Shown here in pieces: positions 7,374-12,979 of a DNA stretch of 64,000 nt. Position numbers and translations under genes: made by a program. The stretch is taken from NCBI GenBank assembly GCA_965603825.1, contig CBFDEM010000015.1, forward strand, positions 62,001-126,000, written 5' to 3'. Within the stretch, counting starts at the first letter, position 1, and every line of letters starts with the position of its first letter. This DNA comes from Blepharisma stoltei ATCC 30299 (lineage: Eukaryota > Protista > Ciliophora). The notes under the pieces were generated by a model. It had not been told where the DNA came from, made no database searches, and saw only the letters and a list, made by a program, of their open reading frames with translations.

Positions 7374-8768
7374 GGCGGTTAGCTTAATTTTAATAGAATT
7401 AAATAAGAATTTGGCATAAGTATGGACTTTTGATATTTTTGGGTTAAATTTATAGGACTCAAGGTTTTGATTTGTATTAAATTTGAAATAACAAAATAAG
7501 TATAAATTAATTATTGAATTGCTTATAGCAAAAATAAAACTTTATTAATTCATTTTTCTTTGCTATTCAATTCTCTTATTCTAAATTTCCTACTATTGTT
7601 GCAAGTCATTTAAAGCATCTATAGGTGTGTAGAGCGAAGCAGTTATATATTTTCTTAATATCAATCCTACTATCTAACAATTTCAAAAATTAAAATTATA
7701 AAAAAAATTCATGAAGGTGATAGACCGAGAGACAGTTTTGCCTCTATACTCTCAAATCTGGGATCAAAACCCTAAAGAGATTAGAAAATAAATTGAAGCC
7801 TTAAGCCAAGTTCTTATATGCGCTCAAATTGAAATTATATGGGAGGATTATGAGATCATGAGCCTAAAATTATGCAATGCTATTAGAACAAAACTTGGAG
7901 TTTCTCTTATTTCAAGGGTAAGAATTTTAAGTGAGGTGAAAGTGGAAAAACCTTTTAATATTCATTTTTAAAAGCCTTGCATGAAATTTTAGATCTAGAT
8001 ATGGATTATGATCTGGGATTCTAAAATTTAAGCAGTTGATAAGCCTGGTAATGGCTGTCTCTGTATGTATTGATTGCCGCGTTAAAACCTCTTTTGAAGA
8101 GTGCGGGATAGGAATAATTGGAGGATATCACAAGAGTTAAAATCAAATAGTAGTGATTATGAGCTGCCTTGGGTTTTTCCCATAAATATCTTATAAGCTT
8201 ATATATATATGAGCCATTGTCTCAAACATTAGCAATACCATCAATGACGAAGACAGAAATATAGATATCATACTTATATCCTTTAGCCAAACTAGTGATA
8301 CTCATTCAAAATTTGAAACATAAAGTCATCTTCCAATACTTCACAATTGGGATTCTACAAGGCGTTAAATACTTATTCAACCCCATTCATCTGCTATTTG
8401 GATTATATACAATAAACTCTTAGCTTTATCTTTATATATCATAAGAAAGCTGCATCATTGCAAGTAGCAGAATATCTCTGCTGTAAATGTCTCGACAACT
8501 TTCTTTTTTATAAAAACTCTTGAATTTCATATAGAATTTTAGCAAAGTTGATAGACTATAGCCTTTTAATTTCACTATTTCGTATCTCTGCACTTTCTGG
8601 AGTCAAAAAATGCAGCAATTTATCAACTGGATTTAGGAGGGCTTGTAGAAACATGAATTCATCCATCTACTTTCAATTTCAGAAAAGATTGTTGGGAGAA
8701 TAAACTTGCTTATTATATTGAGCATAATAAGATTATTCGATGTTTCTCCAGTCTATCGTAATAATAAT

Positions 8769-11700
8769 ATGTCTGAAGAGCAAAGCCAAGCTTTTATTGA
8801 ACCAAATACAATTTATAGTCCATCAGAGATCCTTGAATGATGCACCACAGGCAAACCAATAAATCTTCCTAGAGCAGTTGAAAGCTCAATCCCATTTCGT
8901 TCAAAATTTGCACTTTTTGACATACCATTTTGTTTGCATGACCGTAGCTTCAAAGAAGATGCGCTGTACTCAGAAGAACTATTTTTGAAAAAGAACATTA
9001 GAAGTGGAAACTCTATTATGATTCAACTGAAAGAAACAAAAAATAGCAGTGGTGCTGATAAGCCATCAAGAATAATGCGCTATTCGTACTCAAATGCCTG
9101 ATTTGTAAGAAGAGGCATGCAGAAGATTTTTGAGTTGTACCCAGAGTTTACCTTCCAATGCAACACAAAAGATCTCAACACAATCGGAAGTTTTGCTGGA
9201 AATTATCCATTAATCTACAGCCAAGATCCCCAAAGAGAGCTTATGAGGAAATTAATATTTTATGATGTTGAAGAGACTATTATAAGAAAAGGATTATCAG
9301 TTGACGTATACAGGACAACTCAAGCAAATGGAGAAAGTGCTCAGATATCATATTCAAGGCAACTTGATGCCTGGATAATTTCATCAAAAAATGTCAGCAT
9401 AGCTGCAAGAAGGGAAGAAGATTTGTATCAATTGCATGAAGAAAAATATATTGAAAACAAATATATGTTTGAATCATATGAAGAAAAATATATTGAAAGC
9501 AAATATATGTTTGCAAAGCTAATTGGATTCAAGTGGTTTGATTACGTCAATTCTTTAAACAGAAACCTAGTAGAAAATTTAAAGAATGACTTAGATGGAT
9601 TTACCTTTATAGGTGAATACGTAGGTAATCAAAAATACCAGCATTTAGTAAAATACAATGAAAACACCATATTGTTTTTTGCCTATGTCGATAATAATTC
9701 TCCACACTCCTTTATGCCACCATTAAAAGCATTTTCATTATTCAAAAAATATAATTTAAATCGAGTAGAAGTAGAATACATTGGAAACATGAGGACTCTT
9801 GAAGAATTATATAGAAATTTAGGCGATTTATATAATAAAATCTCATCTGAGGCCTTAACTGAAGGAGAAGGAAGCGTTATTTATCTGCTGGAAAACCAAA
9901 ATCCTGATAACCCTATATTATATGCGGCAAACACTACAATTTTTGGTAATCAGCCCGAAAATTTTACAGAGCAAGAGCTCTCGCAAGCAATTTTAAGCCA
10001 ATTTGCTCTATCTGCGATAAAAATAAAAACTCTTGAGTACAAAATTTTCAGAATGCTAAGAGAAAAGATTAAAAAAGTGATTTCAGATAGAGGGATGAGA
10101 ATACCCTCTTCAAAAGTGAGATTAAAAAAATTTATGCATAAGACCCAGGATTTTTCAAGATATATTGAGCCCCCGAAGCCTTTAGATTATTATTTTAAAA
10201 TTGCTGAAGTCGCTTTTGCTTCTATAAGTCAATATCCATCAGAAAGTAGATTCAATGAAGGATTTATTTATTTTCTTGATACGATAATTTTAAGAATTAA
10301 TTCTGCCAAACCTTCAGAAATCTGTGACAAGGAAATTAATTCTGAAAAATGTATCGAAGAGCTAAATCCCCTTATCGTCACTATTGTCACTCCACCTTTT
10401 ATTCTGGATAAATCCGAAAAGAACGCAATATGTGATGCTTTAAAATCCACAAAAATCGAGAAAACATGAAACAAGAAAATAAGAGTAAAAGAAGGCTTAA
10501 CGGTTTGTTTTCCTCTAGAATTTATGGAAATTAAAGATCGTGTCCCAGAAATACCCTTTTTGTATTTTATAGGACCACAGATGAGGGATTTAAAAAATCT
10601 GAAAATATCATTAGAATGCGCCAAAGGATAAAAAGCAATATAATTCCTTACAGTATGACTGGGTGTTTAAAAGGTGACCCTCATCAAACGATTGAAACTT
10701 TTCAAAACAAAGTTACAACTTTACGGCTGCTTATTGAAGAAAAACAGAGAGATTTTGTTTTAGAAGGGTTTGATACTGATCTATCTCAGTTCATTTTGAC
10801 CTTAAAAACAAAAGTTGATTCGCTGAGAATGAAAGTCCCAGAAGAAATCACACAAATCAAATCCAATGAAATTTTTGTTATTGTTCCGATGGGCATCCCA
10901 GCAATGGGGAAATCCTTTATAAGAGCTTTATTCCAAGCAGCCATAGAAAGCCATGAAGGAGTTACTTTTTCTACTATATCATCAGGCAAAATAAGAGAAA
11001 AATGCATCCAAGAGTATATGGAAAGCTCAAAAATTCGAGATTGAGATTACGCTTACCAGCAAACCAATTGAATCTCAAGAGTAAATTTCGCCAAAAGTCT
11101 ATCAAGAGAAATGAAAACAAAATCCAAATGCCACGTGCTATTTCTTGACAAAAACTTCCCGCCTAACTCTATTCCGGGAACCTTTGCTGAAATAACTAAA
11201 AATGCACTTAAAACATCCCAAATTCGAATCATTGCCCTTGTTCCTGAATGTGGGACCCCATTTGTAATAAATGATGACAAAAGGCACAGAAGTTTTACAT
11301 ATGAACTCTCTTTACCATTTCTTATACAATGTTTAGTAAGGGCGAGAAATAGAGTCGACCATGAAACTTTAACTGGGAGTCTTACAAAAAAAGTTGCTAT
11401 AGTTTTGATGATGTATAACATGTATAGAAATGTTAGGTTTGATGATTTTTTGACTAATGGGTTTGATTATATTATGAGACTGCCATTTACTGAAGAAAAT
11501 GCCTTTGAAGTGGATGATAATATGAGGCTTGTCGTGTCAAAAACTTTGACAGCTTTCAGACCTGGAGGATTGCCAAATGAACATACAATAAGAGATCTAG
11601 TAGAATTAATTGATCAATATGCTGAAATTTTACCAAATATCGACCCAACACCTAAAATCTCTTCAGAATTATCTAAACTTTTTGATCTCGGAATAAGTGG

Positions 11701-12400
11701 AAACTCAGGGCTTGAAGAAGAAACCAAAGAGCCTATAAGAAGAAAAGATGAAATTATTAGCTTTGAAGGAAAAAGCATTGAGAGCGAAGAAGAAATCCAG
11801 CAAAACTGCAAAAAGGGTAGACCAGATCTTAAAAACTATAAGCTTCCAATTTATATTGGAATTGATGCTGATGCATGGTTTAGGCCTTTATTAATTCCAA
11901 TTGTGATTTCTTGCTTACGAGAATTTGCTGATGCTTATGAGCATGAGGACATTGTAAAAGACTTGCAAGAAATTCAAAATGCTGCCGTCCTTGAGTATTT
12001 TTCAGAAGTTTGGACAATTGTGGGTGGTTTGCATGTAACTACTTTTTTCTTAGGCGGGAATAATGAGCTTGAGATGTCAGAAGAATATAGAGAATTCGCA
12101 GAAAACAAAGAAATAAACTTTGTTCTAACACATATAGTATATGTTCCAGGACATATCATATGTGCTTCAGCTGACAAATTTAATCCTTACATAAAAATAG
12201 CGAATAAACACCCACACATGACTTTGTTGACTGGAAAATGGACTGCAAAATATAGCACTGACGTTTTGTCATCAATTCCCCTTGAGTCTGGAATAAATAG
12301 ATATCAGATTTCTCTCAAGCAAGGCCAATTAGAAGCATATTCAATATCATTATCTTCTAAAATAATGGTCCGAGGAATAGCCAAAACATTTTTTAATTAA
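8769..12400 (+). CDS. Trl1-like RNA ligase / polynucleotide kinase / 2H cyclic phosphodiesterase; catalytic substitutions and one frameshift (possibly a pseudogene)
   Basis: With TGA=Trp the first frame is open 8769-10631 and a second frame is open from about 10535 to 12400. Ligase motifs: RRGMQKIFE, TTQANG (I), SSKN (Ia), FIGEYVG (III), EGSV (IV), KIK (V). Kinase: P-loop GIPAMGKS, FLDKN, RxxxR...HETL. Phosphodiesterase: HVT (12032) and HMT (12215). Confidence 0.78.
9436..9513 (+). repeat. In-frame 42-nt tandem duplication (EEKYIE[N/S]KYMF x2)
   Basis: atgaagaaaaatatattgaaa.caaatatatgtttg occurs at 9436 and 9478. Confidence 0.9.
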
Positions 12401-12979
12401 TCATTTAATTTTAAAATTATTTAGCTTAGGAATAGAACGCTTTTATATCAATTCAGTAGATTTATAAAGTCGAAACTGCATCTTTATTTTTTGAATAAAT
12501 AAAAGGCATGAAGAAAAGAGCAATTTCTTTATTTAATCAATATCAAATGCAAATAGTCCTAGATCGGCTTTACCGTAGACAAGAGCCTTTTACATGAGAT
12601 TGAAAGTATCAGTTAAAGTGCCAATAAGGATGATCCAGAATATTGCTTTACCTACATGACCTGCATCTCAACAATTTTATTTCATTAATTACTAATATAT
12701 CATAATGCCTTCACTTTCAAGCACGTCTGAGTGGTGTACTCTGCTTCATATTAACTTTTTAAATTAAAATCCAACCACTTTAAAGACGGTTGACTGAGAA
12801 TTTCCCAATTTTCCAATCTCGAAAACATGAATTCATAGAAAATACGACAAAGAGCATTCAACTGGTACAGCTGTTAGCCCTCATCAATTTGAAAAATTTT
12901 CCTTTTTATCAAGCTAACTGCATCTCTCTCCCTTTACTCTCTGCCACTTACAGCTATTTATACCCTTCTATGCACAAAA

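Follow-up and report, generated by a model that had tools for sequence, protein, structure and literature searches.

A frameshifted paralogue of a divergent Trl1-type RNA ligase family in the ciliate Blepharisma stoltei

The stretch of DNA analysed here (the window) comprises 64,000 nucleotides of Blepharisma stoltei ATCC 30299 and contains, at 8769-12400 on the plus strand, a member of a gene family that resembles the heal-and-seal RNA ligase Trl1. This locus, hereafter the window copy, is one of four full-length-type Trl1-type heal-and-seal ligase genes in the genome (41.5 Mb in 64 contigs); its paralogues are named by contig (C52, C17, C23, C41 and C32). The window copy starts at the ATG at 8769, and its final stop is the TAA at 12398-12400. 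TGA encodes Trp in the Blepharisma genetic code, and the window copy uses TAA and TAG as stops and TGA as a sense codon; two of its five in-frame TGAs (8838, 9099, 10467, 11042 and 11069) correspond to Trp in paralogues or homologues. An earlier interpretation made from the letters alone (the sequence-only reading) treated 8769-12400 as one gene. However, the locus is not one reading frame, since a one-nucleotide deletion at 10545-10549, which that reading overlooked, divides it into two open reading frames (ORFs), and the public annotation accordingly lists two proteins of 620 and 581 residues:

8769..10631, plus strand: ORF-A, 620 residues, annotated protein P0043, with stop TAA at 10629-10631; it holds an N-terminal segment, a Trl1-type ligase (adenylyltransferase and helical C-domain) and, at its end, 28 out-of-frame codons
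10545..10549, plus strand: frame break, one nucleotide missing relative to the paralogues, which have Val-Pro-Ser/Arg-Asn; reading goes on in frame A+2
10655..12400, plus strand: ORF-B, 581 residues, annotated protein P0058, with a linker, a P-loop kinase, a spacer and a 2H phosphoesterase

The frame break and the contigs that cover it

A comparison with the paralogues places the break precisely. Frame A matches them through Asp-Arg-Val-Pro, with the Val-Pro codons ending at 10547, whereas frame B (A+2) matches them from Arg-Asn-Thr-Leu-Phe on, with the codons of Asn-Thr-Leu-Phe starting at 10550. Beyond the break, frame A runs through its 28 out-of-frame codons to the TAA at 10629. The kinase and 2H domains are encoded in frame B, whose open stretch begins at 10535 and includes, upstream of the ATG at 10655, an additional in-frame ATG at 10616.

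Independent contigs agree with the assembly at this site. A DNA contig of X6, a sample not flagged as a source of the assembly, bridges 10545-10549 (record 12; 10057-11326) with neither an indel nor a joint. The same is observed in contigs of three RNA-like runs from a separate study, namely X8 (record 18; 10348-11407), X9 (records 24 and 25; 10404-10568 and 10546-10953) and X10 (record 2; 10517-10719). The frameshift in the window copy is thus a real one-base deletion. An intron does not account for the change of frame, because the flanking sequence aligns with the paralogues on both sides and through the site, and the RNA-like contigs carry no joint; additionally, no GT...AG candidate of a plausible size satisfies the length requirement for such an intron (2 mod 3). 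An assembly error is ruled out by the agreement of the independent DNA and RNA-like contigs, and programmed frameshifting is judged unlikely, as no slippery heptamer is present at the site. Because of the frameshift, the three-domain polypeptide cannot be made from this DNA or its transcripts.

The RNA-like contigs at the locus, which measure neither expression nor transcript ends, are confined to the gene (8757-12375). Their depth is 4-6 at the window copy versus 25-31 at the neighbouring gene. That gene lies downstream on the minus strand (12710-12900) and has an RNA-like contig depth about five times that of the window copy, and the 330-nucleotide spacer between the two (12376-12709) has no RNA-like contig.

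X8 and X9 also contain a second version of the locus, with 13 differences in 11283-11377 and three in 12037-12058, and no such copy is found in the reference assembly. This version is probably an allele or the version of a partner strain. A chimera with C52 was rejected as the source of the 13 differences in X8, only five of which match the C52 letter. The differences in 11283-11377 are mostly non-synonymous, which hints at neutral recent evolution in what is a tiny sample.

The X6 DNA contigs break at 9408-9418, 9693, 11325-11326 and 11537 and continue into unrelated sequence, and at 11325/11326 one loose end resembles an inverted copy of the other. The breaks are probably junctions of germline-limited sequences (internal eliminated sequences, IESs) within the gene, and X6 would then contain micronuclear or developing-macronuclear DNA.

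Family assignment and the state of the three domains

A word search with a 937-residue piece of C23 returned 42 relatives of 550-1545 residues, including proteins from Tetrahymena, Stentor and an MMETSP heterotrich transcriptome, a few of which have a precomputed PF09511 or PF09414 match. Alignments of 29-43 members reveal invariant nucleotidyltransferase motifs (K-A-N-G-E, G-E-Y-x-G, E-G-x-V-x-Y and K-x-K-T-x-E-Y, across 36-43 members), a kinase signature in which a P-loop is accompanied by S-D-x-x-R and R...R..H, and, in most members, two HxT motifs. The motif I of yeast Trl1, KANG, is like that of the Blepharisma family.

AlphaFold models built from the family alignments have predicted local distance difference test (pLDDT) scores of 84.7 for ORF-A and 85.3 for ORF-B, and their structural matches to nucleotidyltransferase, kinase and 2H folds bear out the domain order proposed from sequence (Rnl-type ligase, P-loop kinase, 2H phosphoesterase). 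The seven best Foldseek matches of the ligase model are all fungal Trl1 ligase-domain (LIG) structures. Against the Chaetomium and Candida LIG structures, VIA-align gives Z 21.7-22.0 over 336-339 residues (model residues 16-512, chain residues 39-398), which cover both the adenylyltransferase and the helical C-domain. T4 Rnl1, against which Z is 19.6 over 250 residues, shares only the adenylyltransferase core: its C-terminal domain is unmatched, whereas the C-domain of Trl1 is matched, and it lacks the fused kinase and 2H domains of the Blepharisma family. The kinase model matches the kinase domain (KIN) of Candida albicans Trl1 (6tzo) with Z 14.9 over 192 residues. For the 2H model (ORF-B residues 393-581), the best single-domain matches are CNPase catalytic domains (Z 15-16), the best of which gives Z 16.0 with a root-mean-square deviation of 2.9 over 167 residues. 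The top Foldseek match of ORF-B as a whole is the Candida crystal structure 6u05 (E 1.6e-12), which comprises KIN and the cyclic phosphodiesterase domain (CPD) of Trl1.

Sequence profiles provide weaker matches. The kinase profile matches the Trl1 KIN entry 5u32 (E 1.3e-5) with the P-loop, Asp and R...R..H aligned; the ligase profile matches the Trl1 LIG entry 9qw7 weakly (E 0.019) with motifs III-V aligned; and the 2H profile gives weak matches to 2H proteins (E 0.16-2.6). In a Pfam scan of TGA-free pieces of the window copy and the paralogues, only sub-threshold matches to PF09414, 6PF2K and AAA_33 are found, and none of the Trl1 models PF09511, PF08303 and PF08302 exceeds its threshold. Searches of the PDB sequences with single sequences and four-sequence profiles returned nothing useful. 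The family assignment rests mainly on the predicted folds because even the deeper profiles match weakly.

As in Trl1/Rnl of fungi, plants and trypanosomes, the same three modules occur in the same order on one polypeptide in the intact Blepharisma paralogues. However, the Blepharisma family shares only 10-15% sequence identity with Trl1 and has approximately 110 extra N-terminal residues and long linkers, and in the window copy, which the frameshift divides, the motif I Lys and the kinase Asp are also missing. Two matches to the 2'-phosphotransferase model Tpt1 (PF01885) lie above the cut-off in the genome (C62:119571-120098 and C41:116548-117075), whereas a six-frame search of the 41.5-Mb assembly with positive controls yields no match to RtcB (PF01139). 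One of the two Tpt1 genes lies within a 636-residue open frame and may be fused to something else. The predicted folds, the motifs, the weak profile matches and the presence of Tpt1 without RtcB point to a divergent Trl1-like LIG-KIN-CPD family in ciliates, as the sequence-only reading had supposed. In the literature searched, Trl1 is described from fungi, plants, trypanosomatids, amphioxus (where it is split) and, in one review, 'protozoa', and no paper on ciliates was found. Since the folds match Trl1, Tpt1 is present and RtcB is not found, the family is likely the tRNA-splicing ligase of B. stoltei.

The features of the individual domains in the window copy are as follows:

8994..9011, plus strand: NIRSGN, R79S, a family-invariant ligase position replaced
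9123..9137, plus strand: KIFEL, F120I, a family-invariant ligase position replaced; the KFF segment aligns with ...RGYDKFFN of Trl1
9321..9323, plus strand: motif I codon CAA, Gln185, in place of the adenylate-accepting Lys of the family (KANGE)
9418..9522 (approximately), plus strand: 42-nucleotide tandem duplication inside the ligase domain, present in none of the paralogues
9612..9629, plus strand: ligase motif III, GEYVGN, retained
9861..9884, plus strand: ligase motif IV, EGEGSVIY, retained
10017..10067, plus strand: ligase motif V, IKIKTLEY..., retained
10053..10055, plus strand: K429M, the invariant Lys after motif V replaced by Met
10892..10915, plus strand: kinase P-loop GIPAMGKS, intact, aligning with the P-loops of Trl1 KIN and PSTK
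10985..10987, plus strand: GGC, Gly in ISSGKIR, at the family-invariant Asp position (D740G)
11339..11371, plus strand: kinase R-x3-R...H segment RARNRVDHETL, retained
12029..12043, plus strand: first 2H motif LHVTT (HxT), intact
12212..12226, plus strand: second 2H motif PHMTL (HxT), intact

The Lys nucleophile of the ligase is absent from the window copy: motif I reads TTQANGES, whereas KANGE is present in 38 of the 42 homologues of the first search and in all three full-length paralogues. The kinase column at 10985 is Asp in the 37 other members compared (the paralogues read SSD or CSD), and in a profile alignment this Asp corresponds to the Asp of C. albicans Trl1 KIN. Both substitutions had been identified from the sequence alone, as had the two intact HxT motifs, and each holds in these alignments. 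For the ligase domain, the motif I change was correctly recognized, whereas the 42-nucleotide duplication was missed. This duplication repeats EEKYIExKYMF (9438-9470 and 9480-9512); it was not reported by Tandem Repeats Finder and was found by a separate repeat search. It sits in a low-confidence loop of the model, with pLDDT below 50 at residues 230-241. In the 2H domain, one nearly invariant residue is altered (N to T in KYSTDVL).

Paralogues and evolutionary rates

The search for paralogues with KANG and the kinase Asp, which the sequence-only reading had suggested, yields C52 (1204 residues, 71-73% identical to the window copy), C17 (about 1146 residues) and C23 (about 1190 residues). All three are encoded without interruption and keep the kinase Asp as well as KANGE; of these, C52 and C23 have every module intact. 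C17 (C17:176000-182000, minus strand; P0006), a 1146-residue ORF, retains KANGE and, in the kinase, the P-loop and the Asp, but both of its HxT motifs are lost (LHTETV and YIPVL), so that, judged by its motifs, its defect is complementary to that of the window copy. Two further relatives are kinase-only, with no adjoining ligase or 2H domain: an open frame of 449 codons at C41:275000-280000 (minus strand; GIPGMGKS/ISPDTIR intact) and one of 291 codons at C32:130000-135000 (minus strand; GVPALGKS/CCDTIR intact), both counted as open frames irrespective of a start codon. Approximately 12 kb downstream of the C23 gene (C23:116000-121000, about 1982-2236) lies an 85-residue fragment whose pattern almost equals that of the first part of the C23 2H domain; stops interrupt this fragment, which is probably a partial duplicate and dead. 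The family in B. stoltei thus shows modular birth and death.

In the FastTree phylogeny, the window copy is the sister of C52, with terminal branches of 0.35 and 0.13, respectively, and evolves about 2.6 times faster. An orthologue of C52 from another Blepharisma is present as an MMETSP transcript with one ORF (94% identical over the 432-residue ligase-domain piece compared), and this pair provides the baseline for omega, the ratio of nonsynonymous (dN) to synonymous (dS) substitution rates, in the Nei-Gojobori estimates. The comparisons are listed below:

Columns invariant in the 37 other members (n = 43): changed in window copy 6 (R79S, F120I, K185Q, N190S, K429M, D740G), in C52 0
Columns conserved at 90% or more: changed in window copy 11, in C52 1
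Conserved LIG columns: changed in window copy 9 of 62, in C52 1
Conserved KIN columns: changed in window copy 2 of 22, in C52 0
Conserved CPD columns: changed in window copy 1 of 10, in C52 1
Polarised amino-acid changes, whole protein: window copy 145, C52 80 (relative-rate test, p = 1.7e-5)
Polarised changes, adenylyltransferase core: window copy 37, C52 15
Polarised changes, kinase: window copy 30, C52 16
Polarised changes, 2H domain: window copy 16, C52 13
Omega, C52 versus orthologue (baseline): overall 0.17, LIG 0.10, KIN 0.18, CPD 0.18
Omega, branch to window copy: overall 0.49, LIG 0.57, KIN 0.42, CPD 0.31

These rates point to relaxed selection that is strongest in the ligase, weaker in the kinase and least in the 2H domain, in agreement with the pattern read from the motifs by the sequence-only reading (ligase and kinase disabled, phosphodiesterase intact). 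The conserved ligase residues of the window copy are protected no better than average residues. The branch to the window copy has a dS of 0.275, and the duplication (dS 0.46) is only slightly older than the Blepharisma species split (dS 0.39). Two piece-wise searches found no orthologue of the window copy outside this genome, an absence limited by a length filter and clustering at 50% identity.

Interpretation of the locus

We lean towards the view that the window copy is a young pseudogene, that is, a decaying paralogue that has no selected product now. The intact family members would heal and seal RNA ends in three steps: the 2H domain would open a 2',3'-cyclic phosphate to a 2'-phosphate, the P-loop kinase would phosphorylate the 5'-OH, and the ligase would seal the ends via a Lys-AMP intermediate, after which the 2'-phosphate would be removed by Tpt1. 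The window copy probably arose when the ancestor of intact C52 was duplicated, and then came under relaxed selection. The Lys nucleophile of its ligase became Gln, another four family-invariant residues of the ligase region were lost and the kinase Asp became Gly; it also gained the young 42-nucleotide tandem duplication and then the one-nucleotide deletion in the ligase-kinase linker. Translation of the present transcript would end after the dead ligase domain. Decay is supported by the three other full-length paralogues, in which KANGE, the kinase Asp and a single ORF are all preserved, by the substitutions at conserved columns and the rate asymmetry of the window copy, by its low RNA-like contig depth and the mostly non-synonymous differences of the second version of the locus, and by the failure to find an orthologue elsewhere although the duplication is older than the species split. 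Of the two outcomes envisaged from sequence, a pseudo-ligase or a decaying paralogue, the former as a single three-domain polypeptide falls with the frameshift, and the latter fits better; the active sister would be C52.

Several observations weigh against a pseudogene. Neither ORF contains a TAA or TAG in its 592 and 617 open codons, where 18.6 and 15.5 stops are expected if both had drifted neutrally and untranslated since the duplication. The zero count sets a 95% bound on neutral drift of 0.037-0.044 substitutions per site, or 16-19% of the branch. Because no stops are present in either ORF, the window copy was translated under relaxed selection for most of its history. Omega is below 1 in all domains, and the 2H active site is intact and not accelerated. 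Kinase-only members elsewhere in the genome indicate that truncated members can persist. Additionally, RNA-like contigs are continuous over 10196-12375 in all three runs and patchy over the 5' half, a pattern that fits either 3' bias or a separate shorter ORF-B transcript. The stop-free ORFs and an omega of about 0.5 indicate that the decay is recent or partial; inactivation may thus date from at most about one fifth of the branch, and the locus may have no remaining selected function. One reading is that the dead ligase was perhaps carried along since the downstream 2H domain still needed translation. On this history, the frameshift would be either a recent event or one that is tolerated.

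A less probable, though still credible, alternative is gene fission with retained function, in which ORF-B, translated either through internal initiation or from a transcript separate from that of ORF-A, would be a kinase-dead, CNPase-like cyclic phosphodiesterase that processes 2',3'-cyclic phosphate RNA ends, and ORF-A would perhaps be a non-catalytic binder of RNA ends. Here the 581-617 open codons of ORF-B carry weight, for which the 95% bound limits untranslated drift to 0.044 substitutions per site, roughly 19% of the branch, together with the lack of rate asymmetry in the 2H domain (16 versus 13 changes), its omega of 0.31, nine of ten conserved columns kept, both HxT motifs intact and a fold that matches the CNPase catalytic domain. 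The continuous RNA-like coverage of 10196-12375 would fit such a transcript, but the 3' excess of contigs may be ordinary 3' bias, the contigs run straight across the junction of ORF-A and ORF-B, and any second promoter or start is hypothetical. Eukaryotic ribosomes rarely translate a second ORF that lies behind one of 620 codons, and the candidate ATGs of ORF-B lie 16 nucleotides upstream and 24 nucleotides downstream of the ORF-A stop. The kinase-only paralogues C41 and C32 show that module-only genes exist, and C17 has the complementary defect, with ligase and kinase kept; however, CPD activity is already supplied by two intact paralogues, and the nearly invariant residue in KYSTDVL is changed. 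A broader form of this idea, which we hold more tentatively still, is that the Blepharisma Trl1 family has been taken apart by module with the pieces kept, namely ORF-B as a CNPase-like enzyme, ORF-A perhaps as a binder, C17 as ligase and kinase, and C41 and C32 as kinases.

Known systems offer partial parallels. Vertebrate CNPase and goldfish RICH combine a P-loop polynucleotide kinase-like domain with a 2H domain, as ORF-B does, with two HxT motifs, and CNPase and Trl1 CPD both give 2'-phosphates. However, the two-domain layout of the predicted ORF-B protein came from the breaking of a three-domain gene, and nothing indicates common descent. Trl1 modules that are separated or lost, as at the window copy, have precedents in amphioxus, where the ligase and the polynucleotide kinase/CPDase are described as separate polypeptides in PMC10598085 (citing Englert 2010), and in Mucorales, for which a 'sealing-only' Trl1 is mentioned in PMC10946435. 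In these cases the retained modules are catalytically competent, whereas disabling substitutions affect the ligase and kinase of the window copy, whose split results from a one-nucleotide deletion.

Correction of the frame by the ribosome or in the RNA, which would restore a single three-domain pseudo-enzyme that processes cyclic phosphates or binds RNA ends, is improbable. In its favour, each half is open and can be aligned with the paralogues as far as the break, and omega is below 1 throughout; however, the RNA-like contigs of three runs equal the genomic sequence at 10545-10549, and GTC CCA GAA ATA does not fit the X XXY YYZ pattern of slippery heptamers. Slippage at CCC TTT TTG close by would presumably miss the frame-B residues shared with C52. 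Programmed frameshifting is frequent in Euplotes and is not known from Blepharisma. Least probable is an assembly or polishing artefact or an error made somatically when macronuclear DNA is processed, in which case the gene would be one ORF and still carry Gln and Gly: the break is a single-base difference and the IES-like loose ends suggest that DNA elimination acts elsewhere in the gene, but X6 DNA and three RNA-like runs agree with the assembly across the site, no loose end at 10545 is among those listed, and the site is not a long homopolymer.

If the window copy is simply a young pseudogene, it serves as a warning for annotation, as the public record lists two ordinary proteins at this locus. 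If instead the modules were kept, the healing and sealing functions would be divided among paralogues in a eukaryote without RtcB. The window copy offers a dated snapshot of the domain-by-domain decay of a three-domain enzyme, and together with C17 and the kinase-only genes it may provide a natural test of which RNA-repair modules can stand alone. More broadly, ciliates appear to carry a very divergent Trl1-type heal-and-seal ligase that is missed by curated sequence models and that, in Blepharisma, occurs beside Tpt1 and without RtcB.

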